Sequence record: OP617745.1
Direction: 5' to 3' (one strand)
Length of the DNA stretch: 64,000 nucleotides
Shown: positions 6,850-63,903 of the stretch, one piece after another
How positions within the stretch are numbered: the stretch's first letter is position 1
Layout: each line of letters starts with the position of its first letter
Position numbers and translations under genes: made by a program
The notes under the pieces: model-generated
The model's database searches: none
What the model saw: only the letters and a program-made list of their open reading frames with translations
What the model was told of the DNA's origin: nothing

Positions 6850-7115
6850 TTAAACCACATTATCATTGTATTCACTACTTAGGAACGACTATTTGTAATG
6901 AATTTACGAAAAATAAACATCATCAATTCAGTACTGTAATACGTGATATATTGTTATACATTGAAAAAGAATTAACATTATTTTATAAAAATACCGTATA
7001 TACTTATTGTAATAAAAAGTACAAAATACTCAATTTATCATTTGATGATAGAGGATTTTTATATGTAATGAGTACTGAATATTATACTCATTTGGTTCTG
7101 CATACGGATTTATAA
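6846..7115 (+). CDS. Small hypothetical protein, array family
   Basis: ATGA overlap; IRDILLYIEKELTLFY resembles IRSILDNIEDELNVLY of the next ORF. Confidence 0.65.
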   Translation: MIKPHYHCIHYLGTTICNEFTKNKHHQFSTVIRDILLYIEKELTLFYKNTVYTYCNKKYKILNLSFDDRGFLYVMSTEYYTHLVLHTDL

Positions 7116-23128: not shown

Positions 23129-23137
23129 GGAACAATT

Positions 23138-23166
23138 GAGAGTACTATAGTACTCTCTAATTTTTA
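23138..23166. repeat. Perfect 20-bp palindrome containing two AGTACT sites (possible terminator)
   Basis: GAGAGTACTATAGTACTCTC at 23138-23157, followed by a T-run. Confidence 0.75.
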
Positions 23167-48676: not shown

Positions 48677-48708
48677 TATTATAATTTCTCCAAATATAAT
48701 TATATTAA

Positions 48709-48716
48709 TATTTATA
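48709..48716 (-). promoter_or_regulatory. T4-type late promoter TATAAATA
   Basis: TATAAATA on the minus strand ~33 nt upstream of the ATG; same context at 50983, 54077 and 58119. Confidence 0.7.
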
Positions 48717-48749
48717 ATATAAAAACACTATATCTATACATTTTTTATA

Positions 48750-50954
48750 TTAATAAGTACTATTATAACTTGCACCAGTTACAGTGATATAAAGAACTCC
48801 TGCACCTGAAGAAGTTATTGTTGGTGTTGTACTATCCGGCCAACTCACAGTAAATGTATTTGATCCGGCATAAACTTGATCTAAAACTGTTATTGTTGGA
48901 GTAGATGTTGCATTAAGTTTTATCAGACGACAGGACATTGCCCCAATAACAGAAGAGATATACAGTGTATATGCCCCTGCCAGACCTGCTTGATCTGGAT
49001 AAAGAGAATGACTGCCTGCTGCTGATACCTGAACACTATACGATGCAATTCCAGTAGATGTAGGTTTAGGTAATCTCTCAGAATAAGAACTTTCATAAGT
49101 AAGTTGACTACCTGCTACACAAGCTGCATATTCAAAACTTAAAGTAGATCCAGAATCGCCAACATTGATAGAAATGTCGTGATAAAGGTCATCAGTTGTA
49201 GCCACCACTGTACAGTAGTATTTTTGACCTCTCTTAACCCATGCACCAGAGTACGTAGTGACTGTACCTCCTGCGGATGTACAAGTGACTGTAACCCCAG
49301 AAGAAGTACCTACTGAATTCGCTGTAAATATATACGTTCTGGTAGATGCATACTGTCTAAAATTTGTCCCAAAAGAGGCTGCCGTTCCTGTGGAAGTTAC
49401 TGTACGCCCTGCATTAGCATTTACTGAACAATTCGTAAAATTCCAACCACGAGGAATACTGTTTGTAGGATGACGATACGCCCAGCCAGGATTAGGTACA
49501 AGGTTTTCTCTTATTGGTTCTGAAGTATATGATCTTGTAGAGTTAATTACCTTACCTGTTATAATACAAGAAGTACCTGCCCTATTATCAGTAGGTTCTG
49601 GACAATGTACACTAGTGGTGTCTATGACATATCCAGATGACGTTTGAAAATTAATTAGATAAGGAGGTTTAGAAGTAACTATAGACGATGAAGATTGGAA
49701 ATCACAATCCGTTACAAATACTTTTGAAATTAAATTGTTAGTAGTTTTTCTGAGAATAATATAACCAGAGTCACCATCAGCAACAGTAGTTCCAGCGTTT
49801 GACGCATTATCACCAATAACTTTAATACTGTTTAATGTAATAACAGAATCACCAGCAGTGTCATTATCAACAACACAACCAGTCTGGTCAAAAAGTCCCA
49901 ACTGTACAGTCAATATTCCAAGATAAGATGTTCCTGATTTGTTAACAATTGCTCGCTTATGGCAAAATGTATGGCAATCGAAAACATTACTTCCATCATG
50001 ATCTGTCAGGGTCAGGAATACTCTGTTATCATCTACTAAACATCTCCACATAGCTTCGGCAGGACGAACCACGTTCGGGTTAGCATGACAAGACTCTATG
50101 CGGTTAATATCACGAGACCCAGTAATTTGGAAGTCACGTTCCATGCAGAAGCCGTAGTTCTGGAACAGGAAATGCGAACCACCAGTCGAGACTACAAAAT
50201 TTTTCATCCCATAATATACACAGTTAGTTACATTTAAGAAACTAGTGGAAGAAATAGCAGTTCCGTAATTTAGAATATTTGCCTTACTCGTCGCAGACCA
50301 ATTTTGTAAAGGAGCACCAAATACTATACCTGTGAATGTACAAAGTTGACCACAATTAAACCAAATATTATCCCCTGTGCTACCGTACCATAAAAAGGCA
50401 GAGTCTAGGGGGTTAGCCGCTCTTTCCGCAGGTGTACTTCCAGATAAAGAAGAAGTTCCACCACCTTGTTGAAATTTATTAGATCTAGAGCCTTCAAAAG
50501 TAATCTGTGGTGGAATAGTATGTGTATTTTTAATTTTGTATATTTTAGAAAAAAGTTTAATAACAGGATAGCCATTATTCACTGCATATGATGTTGCTGC
50601 GTCAATTGCATCATCCCAATATTCATCACCATCTTTATGAAATTGTTCAAGAGTAATATATGTATTAATTTCATCCAAGCTTGTTTTTTTATTTAAATTA
50701 TAAGTACCTAAATCAGTAACAAGAGACATTGTGTTTTCTGAAATACTCCATGAAATTGGTGTACCGGTGGCGGCACCAACATTCCAACATGTAGTTGTTT
50801 TTGAATCATATAATACCAGTGTAGTACTAGAGATTTCATGTTTATTAGACAAATATTGAATATTTTCTGGAGAAATTCCATATATTAATGAAATACTAGT
50901 TTTTGTTGTATGAATCGCAGACGATCCTTTTGCTTGTGTTAAATCGGTTGACAT
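48750..50954 (-). CDS. Tailspike/putative polysaccharide depolymerase
   Basis: Conserved N-terminal adaptor (LTQAKGS), DDAIDAA..., beta-helix-like repeats, C-terminal NL.PNP carbohydrate-binding-like domain. Confidence 0.8.
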   Translation of the reverse strand: MSTDLTQAKGSSAIHTTKTSISLIYGISPENIQYLSNKHEISSTTLVLYDSKTTTCWNVGAATGTPISWSISENTMSLVTDLGTYNLNKKTSLDEINTYITLEQFHKDGDEYWDDAIDAATSYAVNNGYPVIKLFSKIYKIKNTHTIPPQITFEGSRSNKFQQGGGTSSLSGSTPAERAANPLDSAFLWYGSTGDNIWFNCGQLCTFTGIVFGAPLQNWSATSKANILNYGTAISSTSFLNVTNCVYYGMKNFVVSTGGSHFLFQNYGFCMERDFQITGSRDINRIESCHANPNVVRPAEAMWRCLVDDNRVFLTLTDHDGSNVFDCHTFCHKRAIVNKSGTSYLGILTVQLGLFDQTGCVVDNDTAGDSVITLNSIKVIGDNASNAGTTVADGDSGYIILRKTTNNLISKVFVTDCDFQSSSSIVTSKPPYLINFQTSSGYVIDTTSVHCPEPTDNRAGTSCIITGKVINSTRSYTSEPIRENLVPNPGWAYRHPTNSIPRGWNFTNCSVNANAGRTVTSTGTAASFGTNFRQYASTRTYIFTANSVGTSSGVTVTCTSAGGTVTTYSGAWVKRGQKYYCTVVATTDDLYHDISINVGDSGSTLSFEYAACVAGSQLTYESSYSERLPKPTSTGIASYSVQVSAAGSHSLYPDQAGLAGAYTLYISSVIGAMSCRLIKLNATSTPTITVLDQVYAGSNTFTVSWPDSTTPTITSSGAGVLYITVTGASYNSTY

Positions 50955-50982
50955 TATAATTCTCCAAATATAATTATAATAA

Positions 50983-51020
50983 TATTTATAAAGAAAAAGC
51001 CTCCATTTGGAGGCTTTTTA
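50983..51020 (-). promoter_or_regulatory. Terminator hairpin plus late promoter TATAAATA
   Basis: AAAAAGCCTCC-attt-GGAGGCTTTTT (50994-51019) next to TATAAATA (50983-50990, minus). Confidence 0.75.
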
Positions 51021-51199
51021 TTTTTTAAATTATATGATAAGTATATGTTATAACAATTTCTAATGTTGTTAAACTTGGTTAAAATAATAAAGAGAAAGTT
51101 GGTTGATGTTTCTGAATATGATGTAGGTGCTTCTGTAAGCAATGCTTGCTGGAATCACACTCGTAGCGATGCAACTATTGATGAGTGATTTAAGCTTCT

Positions 51200-54048: not shown

Positions 54049-54076
54049 TTATAATTCTCCAAATAAATTATAATAA

Positions 54077-54111
54077 TATTTATAATAAAAAGCCCCTGGT
54101 AAGGGGCTTTT
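54077..54111 (-). promoter_or_regulatory. Terminator hairpin plus late promoter TATAAATA
   Basis: AAAAAGCCCCT-ggta-AGGGGCTTTT next to TATAAATA (54077-54084, minus). Confidence 0.75.
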
Positions 54112-54121
54112 GTTGTTTTAT

Positions 54122-57100
54122 TTAAAATACATTAGAAGAAGTTATATCATCTGTAGTATCATACTCAATTTCAATTTGAAACCTACTACCTTTGACGTCG
54201 GACCACAAAAATCTATATGTGCTATCAGTGGATGTTTGTGATTGTAATATAAAATAATAGTTAACAACTGAATTGGAATCGGTAAAAGAACCACATTCAT
54301 ATGCAACCGGATTTATTTTTATTGTCCTAGTAATCGAATTATCATCTGTTATAGTAAAAGTTGTAGAAGTAATAACAATTGGTTTCACAGGCCCATATGT
54401 ATTAAGAGAATAACTTGTGTTACTAGAAATAATAGGTGCATAAATTTTATTAAATCCAATAACAACCGGTTCGGAACCACCAGTTGCTCTATTACTTGCG
54501 TCAAATACAATTTTCATTTTAACACGATTACCAATTCTCTCCATAAAAACACGTTTTGATGGCGTCGTTACTATAGTACTGGAACTACTGGTTGGAATAC
54601 CAGCGTATAATGTCATTTGTGAACTAACATCCTTTTCAAAATATTTCCAATAATATTTAGAATCAACTGTTCCAGTTGAATTTGGAATAAACTTCTGTGG
54701 GGGCGTTTGGTAAACATCAGGTGACATTTGTTCCACAATAACGGATGAACCAGAACCGTTGTCAACAATAGTCCTTCTCATTCGGTTTTTATAACCATTA
54801 TCATTTCTGGCAACAGTTCGGGCGGAACCAAACAAACCCAATGTGTTAACAGGAAATCCATTCATTATAACGACACTACCCTCACCACCCCAATATTCGG
54901 AATAAGTTTTATTGCCAGGCCAGTTGTCAGCACCAGAAGTAACAAAATCATTTGATCCACCAACAACTGTTCCACCATCGCGTGTCAATTTACAACCTTG
55001 TTCAATATAAGCAGTGCCTATAATACAACCAGGAACATTCAACTCACTAGAATCATTATAAGTGGTTAATACAGCGGCTCGGCTACATCCCCATGTTTTT
55101 AATGATAACACTTCATTTAGGATGTGGTAACGATGATATCTACCCATTTGTGACAATGCACGTTTCGAAATTCCCAAAAACGGACTATCAGTATATAAAG
55201 TACTGGTTGACGTTAAATTAGTACCAGTATTAGTACATCTTCCACCATCAGCAGTTCTTTTTGAATTATCATTTTTATAAAAATACGTATTAAAGAAAGT
55301 ATCAATTTTTGAAAATATATCACTACTTCCCCAATAAGTATCATTACTGTATTCAAGAGATTCAATTTTAACAAAATCGCACCATCCAATACAATACACA
55401 TCAGTACCATCAACATAAGGTGGAACACCCTTTCCTGTATTAGAACCACTAATATCATTCCTAGTTAGCCACCAACCACCTATTGTAAAGCCACTTGCAC
55501 AATTTGTCATTCTTATTTTTTTAATAGTTGAGCGATCACCACCCAACCAACTCATTGCAATTCCACAATTATTAAATTGTAATACTCCCCATGTTACTGA
55601 ACCAACTACACCATCAGCAACAATTCCAATAGCCGCATTTTTAATTGTAAAACCGTCAAATTCAATATTTGCAATATCACTATTCATTCTGTTTATAGAA
55701 CCAACTGCGGCTTTATATGTTCCGTCCCAATTCCTAACTCGCAAACAAATACCAATCGTTTGGTTGATATCAACAGTACTTTGATCCCACAAAAAATTTA
55801 ATGAATTACTTGCAATACCCGATGATTTCAAAGAAACACCAGATGGCCAATTTAATCCAACGGCCATTCTGTATTCTGGTTCTGGTGTTAATGTAACTTC
55901 ACCAGTTCTTCTAGTATCGTATGTTCCATCATCAAATGGCATTACAAAATCATAACCCAATGAAGGTTTAATATTATAATTACCACTAAAATATACAGTA
56001 CTAGCACCAATATCTTTCGCTTTCTGTGCCGCTGCCGCGAAGGCGGGACTCCAATCGTTTGGATCGGTTACTAAATTCTTAAATGATTCTACTGTTATAA
56101 TTTTATATAATGCATCTTGTACAGTTCCTGATTGTGACAAATAAACCAGACTTGCACCTTCTCCATCCTCTGTGGACTGTAAATTATCATTAAACTCATT
56201 TAAGTTATTAATATTTTCTTGAACAGTTTTATTGTTTTCAGTACCAATCAATGATGCTCCAGTAGTTGATGACAATATAGTTGTATCAACTTTGTTATTA
56301 AGTGTTTGTTGTAGATCACTACCATCAGGAGTTCCTATTATAGATGTACCAACATTGGATGATAGCGTTGATTTACTAACAAATTGAGAAGATGCATTAT
56401 CATAAGTCAAATATGGATTTGTATTGAAAACCAATTTACCAAGAATTGCAATAAAATTATCACCAGTTTGTAATGCACCATTTAAATTGACGTATTGCCC
56501 ATCAATTGTGTAGTGATTTAAATTTACGCTTTGAAGAATACCATTAATAAAAATAGTAATACTACCAAAATTATACGGAACGAAGATTCTAGTTACATTA
56601 TCAGAGGTTGCAGTATAAGTCCATGTAATAACGTCTTTGTTTGAATCTAATTTATAAAATGGTACGCCGGGTACTGTACCAAGAGTTCCTGTACCAGTCC
56701 ATACAGTACCGTCCACTGGATATAACCAGTACTGGTTCACAGTTGATGTACTACCAACTGTCCACATTTTCAGTGATCTTCGTGGCAATCCAAAAGCTAC
56801 TTCAATACTCGGTAAATGTGGTTGCCATTTTAAATTTATACCTTCATTTTTTAATGAATTTTTTAATTCCTGTAGTTCTTCTGCGGTTGCATAGGAAGTT
56901 AAATCTGCTTTGGTTACTAAATTACTGTTCTGTACTGGAGAGTTATAAACAATAACATGAATATCATCTCCTAATTGTAAAGGAGAACTTAACGTAACTT
57001 CAGTACCGTTTAATATATAAGCACCGCTGTCTGGATTTTGCAAAACACCATTGATAAAAACTTGCAATTCACTAAAATTAAAATAAGGTATATTTAGTTT

Positions 57101-58084
57101 ATTATTCGATTCATCGGTTATGGTACTGGTATAACTGGCATTAACACTATCAATGAATTTTGGATCATTCAATGTAACAAAAACATTATCATTTTCATCC
57201 AAAGACGAAATAAATGATAAAGTTGTGCCTGATACACTATATGCATTATCGTATTGTAAAACACCATTGATATAAACAAGACCATCATCAAACTCACCAG
57301 GTAAAGTAAAATCGGTTTGATCTTGAGATGCAAGAGCAGTAAATGAAACCAAGTCAGTCTCATTACCAAGAACAAGAATATCATCATTTAAATACAATTT
57401 ATCACCAAGAGTGATAGTACTTCCAGAAACAGTATACGAATCTGGATATTGCAAAATACCATTAATAAAAACAAAATTAGTTTTTTTGGTAAATGGTAAC
57501 ACAATAACAGTTTGATCTTCGGTTGCAGTTGCAGTAAATTCTTCATTATCAGTGTTGGTTGTGTCTTCACCAACAACAACATAAATGGTATCACCTGTAC
57601 TTAATTTGGAATTAAATGTTACAGTACCACCAAATGTTTGGTAAGATAAACCTGGATATTGTAGTACACCGTTAACATAGATAATTGCTTTTTTGAAATC
57701 TAGATTAGGAACCGTAAATTGAGTTTGTCCGGCAGCGGCGATAGAACTCCACGTTACTGTAGTTTTGGATGAATCAAAGATAGTAACCCAATCCGAATCG
57801 TTAACATCGTTAACGACTCTCATCATCAATTTCACTGGTGCTGAATCAGTGTCTTTCCAATCGCCAGTATTAAAAGAAAACATCCCAGCGATATTTTCTT
57901 GTTTACCAAAATTTGTTACTAAAGTATTACTTGCTAAATCTGTAGTGCTTTCATCAATTTCATTTATTGTGAATTTTCCTTTAGGCATAATTTTAGAATC
58001 TGATAACTTTTCATTATCAAATATCACTCCACCTTTAAGGGATGCATCAACTGCTGATAGTGATCCTTTAAATTTAAATGCCAT
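54122..58084 (-). CDS. Large tail fibre/tailspike with five ~55-aa repeats and C-terminal beta-helix
   Basis: Five FING.LQ...Y...G..L...GD repeats, W.PHLP..EVA.GLP domain, DWSPAFAAA entry into the beta-helix. Confidence 0.85.
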
Positions 58085-58118
58085 TTCATAATCCTTTTAA
58101 AATTAAAAATTTATAATG

Positions 58119-58155
58119 TATTTATAACGAAAAAGCCCCCACAAGGAGGCTTTTT
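58119..58155 (-). promoter_or_regulatory. Terminator hairpin plus late promoter TATAAATA
   Basis: AAAAAGCC...GGCTTTTT (58130-58155) next to TATAAATA (58119-58126, minus). Confidence 0.75.
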
Positions 58156-58156
58156 C

Positions 58157-60832
58157 TTATACTGAAGTTCCTGAAGAATCCACCCATCCAGTATTGTCAG
58201 CATTTCTCCAAATAGGTTTGTTTATAGTAGTGTCAAAATATTGCATCCCAGTTGTTGCAGCCGTGGAAGGTCTCTCAGCGGTAGTACCAGAATAAACACG
58301 CACTACATCTCCAACTTCTCTCCATATAGTAGCTGATGTTTTTATAAATTTATAAACTCTACCAACCACCATTGTTTTATTTGAATTTTTTGCAAAATTA
58401 TTAATTAAGAATGTTGAACTATTAACCAACGTCACGGATGCAGTAGCATTTAAATATACATCAACTTCCTGACCTATCATACCACCAACAAATCCTGTTA
58501 TTTGTGATAACGATGTTGTTGAAATAGAAATAACACTAACACCATCTACATTTGGTGTTGTGGTAGCATTCGATGAAATTGTTAATAATCCATTAGTTGG
58601 TGTGTATTCAACGCCATATGTCAATGGAGAATTTATCCATCCATTTTTATCACCATAAGAAAAACATTGATTTATCCAAGGTTTTAATCTAAGTGATAGA
58701 TAATCAACATTAGAAAAATCAAATCCATAACTATGCAAACGTTGTGTACCAGTTCCATCAACTGGTGCATTGTCAGTCCATGCTAAACAATTACTTAATA
58801 ATAATCTTGATGCAGAATCCAATGCACCAAAAGCTGGATATAGACCATCACCAGTTCTAGAATTATTATATGAATGACAATTAACCATTTGTACACCATT
58901 TAAAAGATAACCAGGACCAACATTATTATCTGCACGTGAATCAGAAATTTTGTGATGAACGGAACTAGCAGATATATATATACCAGTTTCTGATATTTCA
59001 CCCATTAATCCTGAAATATAATGATTATTTCCTGATATTTTAATTCCACATATATAAGGAGACGAATTGGTAATTGAGTTAAGTCCTTTTACTTGGGCAT
59101 TTCCCTCAATTCTGTGTATTTGACAATCTGATGCACCTGATATTTCAATAGTTCCGACATAATCAGTTCTGATTCTATTTTTTAAACATTCGTTGGCGAT
59201 AACATCCTCTATTAATCCAATATTACCACTAACTTCTAAACCTTGATCTTGAAAACCATAAAAACTACAAGATTTAACGCAAAATTCAGGACCACGTAAT
59301 CTTACCCCACCGGTACTATTAATAGCATCAGTAGCATCAAAATCTATTCCAATAATACCAAAACTTCTGGATGATACATCATTTTGGCTATTAGTTTCTG
59401 ATTTTATAATCCAATCATTGGAAAAATTCCTGAATCTCGTTCCATATGGTCTAGATGGGTTTCCCGGAGTGCCATAAGTCCAAGGTAAGGAACGACGAAC
59501 TGAACCATTTCTACTACCAATAAGCACCACATATTGCTTAGTAACTATATTACAATAATATTGCCCAGGTGGACACTCAATTACTGCTCCACCCAATGAA
59601 TTTGCTTGATTGATGGCATTTTGTATATATACAGACAAATCACCTTCATATGTATAATTTCTAATACCATCATGCAATTCTGGTGGTATGAATTCAAATA
59701 ATGATAACTTATTTTGGTATAAATCATATAGAGTAGATTTATAATTATTAGAAAACATAGAACTTTTATAATTTATATTACTCAACCCATCATCATTGGA
59801 AAATGAATTGTTAAAGTTGGAAAAAATATCAATATTTTGTTGCACAGAAGTACCATTATTGGTATTAATGTTTTTAGAAGCATCATATGATAATAAATCA
59901 TTTTTCAAAACATAGTCATCACTTTGTACAACAATATCACCAAGCATTATAATAATTTCATCATCTTGGTATAATTCTTCTGAAAAAGTAATTACTCTAT
60001 CAGCTCCTACACTATAAGCAGTACTGGGATTCTGTAAAACGCCATTAATATATACAATAGCAGTACTGAAATCATATGGCACTTGAATTGTTGTTTGGCC
60101 TTGCATTGCATTAGCTGTGTAAATTCTATTAAGTTTATCATTAGTACTGATATTCGGATTACCAATAAAAACATATAATAAATCACCAGCTTCTAATTCA
60201 GTAGTGAATGTTAATGTGCTACCCGATACGGCGTAATTCAATCCAGGTAATTGAATTGAACCATTAACAAATACAGTTATAGTACTGAATGTGAATGGAA
60301 TATTAAAATCAGTTTGACCATCGGTTGCTGATGCAGAATATGTTTTAATACTTGCATTAAAATTTGGAGTAATTTTTTCAAAACCAGTACTGGTTTCAGG
60401 GGTACTACCAAGAACACCAACCCCATTCCACACTGTACCATCAGTGTATAACCAATAATCATCTGATGTTGCAGTAGTACCAGATTTCCACATTTTTAAT
60501 GAATTTTTAGTTAGTCCATAAGCAACTTCAACAGTAGGGAGATGTGCGTTCCAGTCCAGAGTTAAACCCTCTGTTTCCATTTTTTCTTTTAATTTGCTGT
60601 ATATAACCGGAACCCAAGAAGTATCTGAAATACCACCATCAGTATTTGGATTATTAGTACTGGTAATATGAGGTAATGTACCTTTCCATACATATCCAGT
60701 TTTAATTGAAGTTACTGGATCTGTATAATATAAAATTTGGTTGTTTGATACTAATCGTTTGTTAATAACAAAGTCACCAGCATCAATTAGTGCACCTGAA
60801 ATATTTGTTGCACTTAAATTGTTCAATGACAT
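58157..60832 (-). CDS. Tail fibre/tailspike (putative depolymerase)
   Basis: N-terminal GY.WKG.LPH and W.AHLP domains, two FVNG.IQ repeats, CPPGQY beta-helix, C-terminal GTTAERP...YFDTT..KPIW motif; ATG 60832 after GAGG. Confidence 0.85.
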   Translation of the reverse strand: MSLNNLSATNISGALIDAGDFVINKRLVSNNQILYYTDPVTSIKTGYVWKGTLPHITSTNNPNTDGGISDTSWVPVIYSKLKEKMETEGLTLDWNAHLPTVEVAYGLTKNSLKMWKSGTTATSDDYWLYTDGTVWNGVGVLGSTPETSTGFEKITPNFNASIKTYSASATDGQTDFNIPFTFSTITVFVNGSIQLPGLNYAVSGSTLTFTTELEAGDLLYVFIGNPNISTNDKLNRIYTANAMQGQTTIQVPYDFSTAIVYINGVLQNPSTAYSVGADRVITFSEELYQDDEIIIMLGDIVVQSDDYVLKNDLLSYDASKNINTNNGTSVQQNIDIFSNFNNSFSNDDGLSNINYKSSMFSNNYKSTLYDLYQNKLSLFEFIPPELHDGIRNYTYEGDLSVYIQNAINQANSLGGAVIECPPGQYYCNIVTKQYVVLIGSRNGSVRRSLPWTYGTPGNPSRPYGTRFRNFSNDWIIKSETNSQNDVSSRSFGIIGIDFDATDAINSTGGVRLRGPEFCVKSCSFYGFQDQGLEVSGNIGLIEDVIANECLKNRIRTDYVGTIEISGASDCQIHRIEGNAQVKGLNSITNSSPYICGIKISGNNHYISGLMGEISETGIYISASSVHHKISDSRADNNVGPGYLLNGVQMVNCHSYNNSRTGDGLYPAFGALDSASRLLLSNCLAWTDNAPVDGTGTQRLHSYGFDFSNVDYLSLRLKPWINQCFSYGDKNGWINSPLTYGVEYTPTNGLLTISSNATTTPNVDGVSVISISTTSLSQITGFVGGMIGQEVDVYLNATASVTLVNSSTFLINNFAKNSNKTMVVGRVYKFIKTSATIWREVGDVVRVYSGTTAERPSTAATTGMQYFDTTINKPIWRNADNTGWVDSSGTSV

Positions 60833-61357
60833 ATTAAACCTCATCTAAAAGTTTATGTATAGTATTATTTATGATGCTCATTAGAACTAAATACATGAAA
60901 GCAAATGCAAACTAAGAGGTTTTTGACATGTCTTTAAGTAATTTAAGCTCAAGTAATAGTAATGGGGCATTTCTTGATTATGGAGAATTCAGAAGTGGTG
61001 TTTATATCCAAACATCAAATCAGATTTTGTACTTCACTGATGAAAATGGAAATAAAGTAGGTTATCAGTGGAAGGGACTTTTGCCTCACACAACAACAAC
61101 AAATGATCCAAATACTGATGGTGGTATTTCAGATACTGCTTGGTGTAGTATTGTTGGTAGTGGTTTTATTGAAAAATTATCAAAAGAAGGAATTGATTTA
61201 AGTTGGAAAGCACACTTACCAACAGTTGAAGTTTCTTACAATTTACCACATAAATCACTAAAAATATGGGAAGAAGGTACGATTAGTACTGATAATGATT
61301 ATTGGTTATACCCAGGGGATGGTACCGTATGGAATGGGGTTGGTGTTCTTGGTAGTA
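60403..61357. repeat. Perfect 28-bp inverted repeat (60403-60430 / 61330-61357)
   Basis: TGGAATGGGGTTGGTGTTCTTGGTAGTA and its reverse complement. Confidence 0.9.
60620..61137. repeat. Perfect 32-bp inverted repeat (60620-60651 / 61106-61137)
   Basis: ATCCAAATACTGATGGTGGTATTTCAGATACT and its reverse complement. Confidence 0.9.
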
Positions 61358-63903
61358 TTCCAGATGTACCTTTTAAGCAAATTGTACCACAAAATAATGT
61401 AATAGAATGGAGTGCAATTGCAACAGAAGGACAAAACCAATTTACTGTACCATATGAATTCACAAATATATCAGTTTTTATTAATGGATTATTACAGAAT
61501 AAAAGTACTGGTGGATATATGGTTAATGGCAGTACCGTTACATTAAATGGTTCATTGAAAGCTGGTGATGATATTCATGTAGTAATATCAAATATCCCTA
61601 TTAAAAATATAAATTATATTACTGATGTTGAATTATCACAACCTGATACAGCCAATAAAATAGGTCTTTTACATGGTGGAAAAGTACAAGATTTACAAAA
61701 ATTTCTTTCATTTGATATGTTTAATATAGATAAAACTGGAAGTACCGATGTTACTTCTAAAATTGAAAATGTTTTCTCTATTGCTAATAACTTTGGATTG
61801 GAAGTTATACAAAACGATGGGGTGTACCTGATTTCTGGTAATTTCAGTATTCCCGTTAAATATGGTTTCGATCTTTCTGGTGCTAAGTTTCTACTTGCTG
61901 CAAATACTACTGGTCAATTTTTGATAAGCCAGAGTAAAAAACCTACTACCTATGATTCTACAAGTGCTCTTGTAACGGCAATGAATGCAAAGGCAAGTAC
62001 AGATTTTGTCGCTGGTAATGGGATTTTAACTTCGTTGAAGGATAGTACTGTTCTTAACAACAGTATGCTGTTTATGTTAGGTGCAGATGATCTATTACAG
62101 TACACTGGTAATGCCTCACCCACCAAATGGCGTCACGTAAGTAACCTGTATCATTATGGCCTTCTTGCTGTGCCTTTTAAATATGGTGTTTCTGCACTTA
62201 CTTCAGTATATTCCTTACCTATTGCAGACAGCGTAACTGTTTGTAAGTTGCCAATCATTGACTTGCAGAACAACCCCCACACTATTCTGTTTGCATTTAA
62301 CGGTATTACAAGGTATGAGATTCATGAGGGAACCTGCATTAATAAAGCCCAGTCTCAAGTTGGTATTTTCCATATGGCATCCCTTACCAACTACTCTCTT
62401 GTAAACATTTATGTTATGAGAGATACTCATCCTACTGTTTCTTATTCAGATGCAGGTATGACACAGCAGGCAGCATCATACACGCTAAACTATGGGCGAG
62501 GCACAGATCTTACTGTCTATCACAGTGGGAGTCAGGGATATGGATGGGGGGCAACTGGCGGTGGGGATATTATAGCTAATACAAGATTCTTGTATTCAAA
62601 CTTTAACAGGTTTGACTCACACAACCCAATACTTGGATATTTCGATGCAATTGATTGTACTTTTGGTGTTGGTGGTCTTGCTGTAGCAGGCTTTGGTACG
62701 ATTAATATTGTTAGACCTCGTTTTTCACGAAACCCTAACAGTAATGACCCTTTTGGTGGGAATTTGCCTATGTATTTCAGGATTCGTGAAACCCACGGTG
62801 GCTGGTTTGATGGATCACTAAATATTACAGATATGGTAGTAGACGGTGTGGACACTATTCTACCCAACTTTGTGGAAGCCCCACAAATTAGTGATACACA
62901 ATTACCAGCAGGAAGTCCTGTGCAGCCTTGGGCCTTTAAACATATCTATATTGATGGATTGGAATTTACTACACCTAAAGTAGGCAGACGCTTGAATAAG
63001 TTCCATTCCCACTCTGGGCCATACTCTAGTGGGACTTATCACCCAAAAAGTATTATTATTAAGCGTCTTAAATACAATTGCCAAGGAAGTGCAGACCCTG
63101 AACAGGATGCTTTAGTTTTTGATATCACTAATGCTAAACAACAGACATTTAATACAGCAGCAAACCATGTAGCTATTGAACCTGCTACTACTGAGATTGT
63201 ATTGGAGGATTGTGAAGTAGCTTCTCTTGTGTTTAAGAGAAGTGCCATAGCCGCATCCCATTGTGTAGATGTAACCTTAGTAAGGTTGTCCCCATCACAA
63301 CCAGATGGGGATTACCCAGTAATTCATACTAATTTGAAAGGTAGATACAAAGCTATTGATTCTAAAATTGGTGGCTTTGATGATAGTGCCTTTGGTGTAC
63401 CTACTGCACATACATTGATGTTTGATCAAGTAAGCTGTATCAACAAGCATAAGGGTACAGACCTTCCCTATAAACTGGCGGGGGGATATCCTCACGACTT
63501 TACTTCCGTGGGTACTACCTTCATTGGTAACTACTCACGAGCAGAGGTAACTGCTCAGAACACAAACCTTGGACAGTGGTCATCTCTTGATGGGTGTAAG
63601 TATTATACGAAGGAGGGGGGAATCACCACTCACCTGATGATGTGGTCAGGTAATATCGGTTCAACACAGACTGACATTAATATAAGCATCCATGATGGGA
63701 ATACCTTACTATCCTCATTAATCCTTGATAGTAAGATTATATTTGATGAGATGAGGTTATGTAATGTGACTGGTATAGTTGGACGACAACTGTACAACCC
63801 ATCTTCTGGGGGTTACTACTACAATGTGGCAAGGAATGGGCATAGAGTTAATATCAATTCAGGTGCAGGGTCTGCATCAATTAGAGAAATACATGTCAAA
63901 TAA
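60928..63903 (+). CDS. Tail fibre/tailspike, paralogous N-terminus to 58157-60832
   Basis: Same N-terminal domains, one FING.LQ repeat, then a beta-rich passenger; GAGG RBS; CTAAATA upstream. Confidence 0.85.
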   Translation: MSLSNLSSSNSNGAFLDYGEFRSGVYIQTSNQILYFTDENGNKVGYQWKGLLPHTTTTNDPNTDGGISDTAWCSIVGSGFIEKLSKEGIDLSWKAHLPTVEVSYNLPHKSLKIWEEGTISTDNDYWLYPGDGTVWNGVGVLGSIPDVPFKQIVPQNNVIEWSAIATEGQNQFTVPYEFTNISVFINGLLQNKSTGGYMVNGSTVTLNGSLKAGDDIHVVISNIPIKNINYITDVELSQPDTANKIGLLHGGKVQDLQKFLSFDMFNIDKTGSTDVTSKIENVFSIANNFGLEVIQNDGVYLISGNFSIPVKYGFDLSGAKFLLAANTTGQFLISQSKKPTTYDSTSALVTAMNAKASTDFVAGNGILTSLKDSTVLNNSMLFMLGADDLLQYTGNASPTKWRHVSNLYHYGLLAVPFKYGVSALTSVYSLPIADSVTVCKLPIIDLQNNPHTILFAFNGITRYEIHEGTCINKAQSQVGIFHMASLTNYSLVNIYVMRDTHPTVSYSDAGMTQQAASYTLNYGRGTDLTVYHSGSQGYGWGATGGGDIIANTRFLYSNFNRFDSHNPILGYFDAIDCTFGVGGLAVAGFGTINIVRPRFSRNPNSNDPFGGNLPMYFRIRETHGGWFDGSLNITDMVVDGVDTILPNFVEAPQISDTQLPAGSPVQPWAFKHIYIDGLEFTTPKVGRRLNKFHSHSGPYSSGTYHPKSIIIKRLKYNCQGSADPEQDALVFDITNAKQQTFNTAANHVAIEPATTEIVLEDCEVASLVFKRSAIAASHCVDVTLVRLSPSQPDGDYPVIHTNLKGRYKAIDSKIGGFDDSAFGVPTAHTLMFDQVSCINKHKGTDLPYKLAGGYPHDFTSVGTTFIGNYSRAEVTAQNTNLGQWSSLDGCKYYTKEGGITTHLMMWSGNIGSTQTDINISIHDGNTLLSSLILDSKIIFDEMRLCNVTGIVGRQLYNPSSGGYYYNVARNGHRVNINSGAGSASIREIHVK

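Follow-up and report, generated by a model that had tools for sequence, protein, structure and literature searches.

Two tail-spike genes of Klebsiella phage KP13-7, a jumbo phage of the genus Alcyoneusvirus, diverge head to head and share exact inverted repeats of 32 and 28 nucleotides (nt) in their 5′ regions, and these repeats were probably left by ectopic gene conversion that has recurred, in short tracts, between the paralogous domains that anchor the two proteins to the virion at their N termini. The window analyzed is a stretch of 64,000 nt that is 100% identical to record OP617745.1 (357.7 kb; 357,701 nt), with window position 58000 corresponding to record position 244000. On the minus strand, gene A (58157..60832; GenBank coding sequence 244157-246832 of OP617745.1) encodes a tail-spike capsule depolymerase that is the ortholog of RaK2 gp531, and on the plus strand gene B (60928..63903) encodes a tail-spike protein at the position of RaK2 gp532 and K64-1 S2-5. 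The first ~146 residues of the two products are 59% identical, and the genes are evidently old paralogs with homogenized patches within codons ~60-145.

The arms of the 32-nt repeat (block 1) lie at 60620..60651 on the minus strand, in gene A codons (N)PNTDGGISDT, and at 61106..61137 on the plus strand, in gene B codons (D)PNTDGGISDT; those of the 28-nt repeat (block 2) lie at 60403..60430 (minus) and 61330..61357 (plus), both in codons for WNGVGVLGS. A preliminary description of the window had placed exact 32-bp and 28-bp inverted repeats at these positions in paralogous fiber genes diverging from a 95-bp spacer, and we find the same arrangement, the spacer (60833..60927) measuring 95 nt with the annotated gene A start at 60832 (GAGG ribosome-binding site). 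It had also pointed to the symmetry of both pairs about ~60879 and to crossover in frame, which are real but an automatic consequence of colinear paralogy: the repeats are nested, share an axis and would recombine in frame because their arms are homologous codons of colinear paralogs that start equidistant from the spacer (A nt 182-213 matching B nt 179-210 in block 1, and nt 403-430 of both genes in block 2). A third exact repeat, of 17 nt, pairs 60446..60462 (minus; codons DDYWLY) with 61295..61311 (plus). Inverted repeats with an exact seed of at least 18 nt number only three in the whole 64-kb window, two of which are these blocks; the other is a 25-nt overlapping palindrome at 23131-23164 (88% complementary). 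Homogenization is specific to the head-to-head pair, with A and B each sharing only a 15-nt exact core with gene C, a further paralog that is the next plus-strand gene and lies just past the window end. Block 1 also holds GATGGTGG, one mismatch from the Chi octamer, a resemblance that we mention as speculation.

Strong protein conservation combined with AT-biased codon usage might by chance yield two long exact matches, and the peptides are indeed conserved to a high degree, with the GGIS..W motif also seen in the N-terminal domains of distant tail spikes (a weak match to PF18668 and an alignment to PDB 9d84), and the codons of block 1 are mostly preferred ones. We nevertheless regard chance as extremely improbable. 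Outside the blocks, A and B use the same codon at 43 of 89 identical degenerate residues (0.48), compared with 0.45 for independent draws from the codon usage of the fiber genes, so that synonymous sites there are saturated. In codon resampling, the probability of a longest exact run of at least 32 nt was 0.001-0.006, and runs of at least 32 and at least 28 nt never occurred together (0/3000 trials). Rarer codons are carried by the blocks in both genes, namely the non-preferred GGG (12% of Gly) and CTT (19% of Leu) of block 2, and chance leaves unexplained the multi-nucleotide haplotypes common to both paralogs that are described below. Simulation and codon alignment both reveal patches of nucleotide identity, synonymous sites included, within otherwise saturated paralogs. 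The resampling upholds the earlier view that block identity extending to third codon positions is unusual, and synonymous divergence along the 5′ regions places that identity above what protein conservation plus codon bias would give.

We compared the locus across seven GenBank Alcyoneusvirus genomes and nine metagenome contigs found via a protein collection, for a total of 16 independent or semi-independent sources. Orthology and synteny with RaK2 ORF531/ORF532 (head to head, ~94-nt spacer) were present, the arrangement was the same in all 16, and a 1001-nt core was colinear in every complete genome; the spacer was 94-95 nt in 15 relatives and 101 nt in the contig L014. Over the 16 sources, the longest exact match in block 1 was 38, 38, 32, 31, 27, 27, 27, 27, 23, 23, 23, 23, 19, 14, 14 and 0 nt, and that in block 2 was 28, 28, 28, 28, 27, 27, 27, 17, 17, 17, 17 and 14 nt, with less than 14 nt or no match in four. 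K64-1, phiKp_21, OU509535 and L014 have the same gene arrangement with an exact repeat of just 14-19 nt or none, and the inverted repeats are evidently not a maintained feature.

The divergent lineage L014 separates the peptide from the nucleotides. Its gene A has 72% nucleotide identity to that of KP13-7, and both A and B encode NDPNTDGGISDTAW, yet seven synonymous changes separate them within the 12 PNTDGGISDTAW codons, and their longest exact run is shorter than 12 nt. It is thus protein-level selection that conserves the motif, and the RaK2 clade shows nucleotide identity over and above it.

Alleles within the blocks and between them are shared by the two paralogs across phages. A linked three-nucleotide haplotype, AGC-ACG (versus AAT-ACT), is carried by K64-1 and phiKp_21 in gene B and by L015 in gene A; for one Thr codon, KP13-7, OU509535 and L019 have ACT in A as well as B, and RaK2 and Muenster have ACA in the two genes; and GCT/GCC and GTT/ATT variants are found in either paralog. 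At the upstream border, RCIP0023 has the variant AAC-GAT in A and several contigs have it in B, while in L022 the A-type AAT-AAT is found in B. We counted polymorphisms in an alignment of 14 phages (L024 was left out; L023 and L024 may be near-duplicates), revealing 20 columns in which at least two alleles are shared between the paralogs, all in A nt 180-432, the stretch from the start of block 1 to the end of block 2, and none in nt 1-179. Columns polymorphic in both paralogs numbered 26 compared with 9.5 expected (P = 3e-8), and 20 compared with 12.7 expected at third codon positions alone (P = 0.004). Tract borders vary between strains, and identity is lost in places where the peptide persists, both of which are marks of concerted evolution. 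Shared polymorphisms and haplotypes of this kind are the classical signature of ectopic gene conversion, and gene conversion between A and B is well supported. The preliminary description had proposed ongoing gene conversion or inversion; the former is borne out by the excess identity, the variable borders, the shared alleles and L014, and the latter is not.

The same counts bear on a different explanation, in which selection acts on the nucleotides themselves and each gene contains the blocks as a cis element, for example a site of protein binding, a translational pause or a messenger RNA (mRNA) structure. Consistent with this idea, all seven GenBank phages have the same 15-nt core GATGGTGGTATTTCA in A, B and C, and most phages keep the rarer GGG and CTT in block 2 of both A and B. 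However, about 20% of columns are polymorphic in nt 180-432 compared with 5-8% in nt 1-179, which argues that there is no purifying selection on nucleotides in that stretch, and among the seven phages ~11% of block-1 positions vary compared with 8.8% region-wide, with synonymous polymorphism no lower than in the flanks. L014 keeps the peptide and not the nucleotides, and block borders differ between phages. Pairing between the A and B mRNAs through the blocks was rejected, the two carrying identical rather than complementary sequence. We consider a cis element very unlikely. The blocks as borders of module exchange between phages were also rejected; similarity to relatives ends well beyond them, at about residue 300-336 of A and residue 217-270 of B.

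Gene conversion between the paralogs would be carried out by a T4-like system of homologous recombination and replication belonging to the phage itself, through either non-crossover strand invasion or template switching between nearby inverted copies. A RecA-family gene (RecA/UvsX-like protein) is present in the KP13-7 genome, and RaK2 has been described as encoding a RecA-like protein, both recombination endonuclease subunits and an endonuclease VII homolog (PMC3622015). Exchange would start at the most conserved peptide motifs because enough nucleotide homology probably survives only there. Orientation would normally be retained, and inversion, as the crossover outcome, would be a rare by-product at most and not a regulated switch. 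Several points weigh against this account. Conversion is read from sequence patterns and no event was directly observed; some shared third-position alleles could reflect recurrent mutation; the 14 phages in the polymorphism counts are not phylogenetically independent, and some of the metagenome contigs are possibly near-duplicates; and strand invasion or template switching is a mechanism that we infer. In addition, a contig from a wastewater sequencing run (X4) shows precisely the inverted junction through the 32-nt repeat, which could mean that crossovers occur and can dominate a population.

That contig is also a point in favor of the switch envisaged in the preliminary description, a possible recombinase-free invertible element in which crossover in either repeat would swap promoters and N-terminal anchor segments between the two proteins. 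In such a flip-flop, the 0.5-0.9 kb center would be turned over regularly by homologous recombination at the arms of the 32-nt or the 28-nt repeat, to produce a mixed population of phages with differently wired fibers. Because the arms match exactly, in frame and in head-to-head orientation, both products of a flip would be intact genes; the phage encodes a RecA-like recombinase, and that the arms do in fact pair is shown by gene conversion between them. The X4 contig (891 nt) joins 60145-60619 via the repeat to the reverse complement of 61137-60722. Against a regular flip, the reference orientation is found in each of the 16 genomes and contigs, where A-type segments stay A-type and B-type segments stay B-type past both blocks, with no inverted relative among them, and none of 35 protein cluster representatives (13 A-type, 10 B-type and 12 C-type) has a chimeric A/B N terminus. 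A fragment-length protein search for chimeric partial open reading frames returned two C-type fragments only. Scans for relatives found RaK2 alone in IMG/VR and none in JGI metagenomes. The decay of the repeats to 14-19 nt or nothing in four relatives of the same arrangement also argues against a maintained switch, as does the matching promoter class of the two genes, and we judge regular inversion to be unlikely.

The data of all 22 runs consist of contigs assembled from 31-letter words, which cannot resolve the orientation of a 32-nt repeat or minor isomers. Contigs from the source run (X1) and from two metagenome runs (X2 and X3) stop at the 32-nt repeat, and the 32-mer (a 38-mer in X2) forms its own contig at double depth; the 513-514-nt center is a separate contig in X1 and X2 and is covered by shorter pieces in X3. 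The inverted junction in X4 is the sole hint of crossover, but either orientation yields the same words, and a contig gets through the repeat only where two of its four branches have been lost, a common occurrence at the depth of 2 of this run; we counted the junction neither for nor against inversion. A joint on opposite strands in X2 (60547/61755) was examined as a candidate inversion and rejected, being a downstream paralog that aligns at 78% identity. For RaK2-like phages, a repeat of 32-38 nt is thus an assembly hazard at which contigs from 31-letter words break (three runs) or mis-thread (one low-depth run), and apparent 'inversions' of these phages in short-word metagenome assemblies should not be trusted.

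Site-specific recombination offers no alternative route to a switch. The Resolvase family of serine recombinases (PF00239) had no match at E ≤ 1 across the whole 357,701-nt KP13-7 record, in a search in which control genomes scored, and tyrosine recombinases of the integrase family (PF00589) likewise had none at E ≤ 1 in the whole genome. The earlier remark that no invertase is visible in the window was therefore right and extends to all 357.7 kb, and the lack of any Resolvase- or integrase-family recombinase excludes a switch of the Gin/Cin or shufflon type.

We then considered what a flip would change. The spacer, as read from its sequence, contains two GAGG ribosome-binding sites and two late-promoter-like TAAATA boxes, one for gene A (CATAAATA; 60866-60873, minus strand) and one for gene B (CTAAATA; 60887-60893, plus strand). 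Gene C and four further minus-strand genes in the cluster also have a TAAATA box ~35-40 nt before their ATG, usually just behind a terminator-like hairpin, and the boxes of A and B lie at the same distance. The preliminary description was thus correct that box variants exist that a flip would swap; the two are of the same late-promoter type, however, and since A and B share box type and distance, a swap would not obviously change timing or expression class, so that no regulatory change is expected. Each arm falls within the N-terminal domain encoded by a complete gene with its own promoter, and a flip would therefore exchange N termini and promoters and not receptor-binding ends, the segments concerned being 60 or 134 N-terminal residues that are ~59% identical. 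More widely, the box before each fiber gene examined is mostly TTATAAATA and in several cases directly follows a GC-rich hairpin and T-run (window positions 48677-48796, 50955-51074, 54049-54168, 58085-58204 and 60833-60927, and 18147-18266 of L001). The fiber-gene boxes look like T4-type late promoters, apparently with one terminator-promoter unit per gene.

It is improbable that in KP13-7, RaK2 and Muenster (28-38-nt arms) a RecA-like system flips the cassette of promoter and N terminus at a measurable frequency. Were this the case, a minority of virions would carry chimeric anchor domains and depolymerases docked at exchanged positions of the branched fiber, inversion would be an invertase-free source of structural heterogeneity, and the X4 junction would be a natural example. 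We give a similarly small chance to rare inversion by the phage RecA-like recombinase as a by-product of the same pairing. Overall, we found no evidence of a new kind of genetic switch.

Invertible tail-fiber segments are known from phage Mu (G/Gin), phage P1 (C/Cin) and the e14 element (P/Pin), where they need a serine invertase, an enhancer and Fis. In these systems the C-terminal receptor-binding parts swap behind a fixed N terminus and promoter, and both orientations are readily found. The KP13-7 locus resembles them in having inverted repeats of ~26-34 bp in or next to tail-fiber genes and in that inversion would give alternative fibers in frame. It differs in that the genome has no Resolvase- or integrase-family gene, that the swapped parts would be the N termini and promoters of two complete genes, and that only one orientation is found, in 16 of 16 assemblies, apart from the ambiguous X4 junction. 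A second comparison is with the distal tail-fiber genes of T-even phages, in which conserved 'His-box' motifs are exchange points between phages that swap adhesin specificity. Here too, short conserved coding motifs provide islands of homology for T4-type recombination, but in KP13-7 the exchange would take place between two inverted paralogs of one genome, and at the anchor end rather than the receptor-binding end.

Parallels to conversion between inverted paralogs come from chromosomes. The human Y palindrome P6 has been reported to undergo arm-to-arm gene conversion with rare inversion (PMC3723533), and a flip/flop on Saccharomyces chromosome XIV is described as arising from homogenized paralogs (PMC9731477). 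As depicted in these reports, inverted copies are locally identical through non-crossover conversion and inversion is the rarer crossover outcome, a pattern that the phage locus would share. In contrast, the tracts measure tens of nucleotides in the virus compared with kilobases in the chromosomes, and in KP13-7 they are confined to the most conserved peptide motifs and inversion is hypothetical.

The locus itself is known from the branched multi-depolymerase fibers of Alcyoneusvirus, in which RaK2 gp531/gp532 and K64-1 S2-4/S2-5 occupy the same position, head to head with a 94-95-nt spacer. In RaK2, gp526-gp534 have been placed in the branched long tail fibers, and by structure prediction the N-terminal domains of gp531-gp533 resemble D1/D2/XD of the CBA120 tail spikes and have a docking role (PMC10253068); gp531 has been characterized as a K54-specific capsule depolymerase (endoglucosidase; PMC10550766). 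The portions of the RaK2 literature that we read (PMC10253068, PMC10550766 and PMC3622015), together with keyword searches, yielded no mention of nucleotide-level inverted repeats or of exchange between the paralogs. Gene conversion between A and B would add that in this multi-spike jumbo phage two depolymerase spikes apparently do not evolve independently of each other at their docking ends, which seem to be repeatedly cross-corrected. Such correction of the anchors would help to keep both spikes compatible with the same fiber scaffold while the receptor-binding ends swap freely.

The two genes differ in how far they follow their RaK2 counterparts. A match of 97.2% nucleotide identity to RaK2 spans 58119-61580 and so covers ORF531, along the whole of gene A, and the 5′ region of gp532. 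The N-terminal ~217-270 residues of the gene B product are orthologous to RaK2 gp532 and to the K64-1 tail-fiber gene, whereas its C-terminal receptor-binding part is different from theirs, similarity stopping near 61580 for RaK2 and near 61739 for K64-1 and RCIP0023. Gene A matches PHROG tail fiber and tail protein families, gene B matches the tail fiber protein family phrog_16586 (E 2.6e-176), and residues 1-300 of these proteins match PHROG tail protein families. Matches of A and B to Tail_spike_N (PF18668) were weak (E 1e-3 and 6.5e-4; 19.6 and 20.2 bits) and fell under the 25-bit cut-off.

Within gene B, positions 61230-61329 (codons ~101-134) occur as two haplotypes that are ~20% divergent over 100 nt between flanks of 95-100% identity, one found in KP13-7, RaK2, K64-1 and RCIP0023 and the other in Muenster, phiKp_21 and OU509535. 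This segment is a mosaic patch, and its right border abuts the 28-nt block. In gene A, the K64-1 ortholog (L003; NC_027399.1) has two extra A's at ~6990-7012 (window ~60811), in the A-run after codon 7, which frameshift its N terminus. The Met equivalent to residue 85 is the first residue both of the protein deposited for K64-1 and of the solved structure 9k4a ('Depolymerase, capsule K1-specific'). The frameshift either reflects a sequencing error or is genuine, in which case the first anchor subdomain is lost by truncation.

Copies of the N-terminal domain in the KP13-7 genome are found in genes A, B and C and, more weakly, in the gene after C. A genome search with gene A residues 1-148 also revealed an internal half copy at 56669..56875 on the minus strand, ~400 residues into a 1320-residue fiber protein and 53% identical to gene A residues 78-145. 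In the codon alignment this half copy is not homogenized with A or B, and it would fit a branching or docking module embedded in a large fiber protein.

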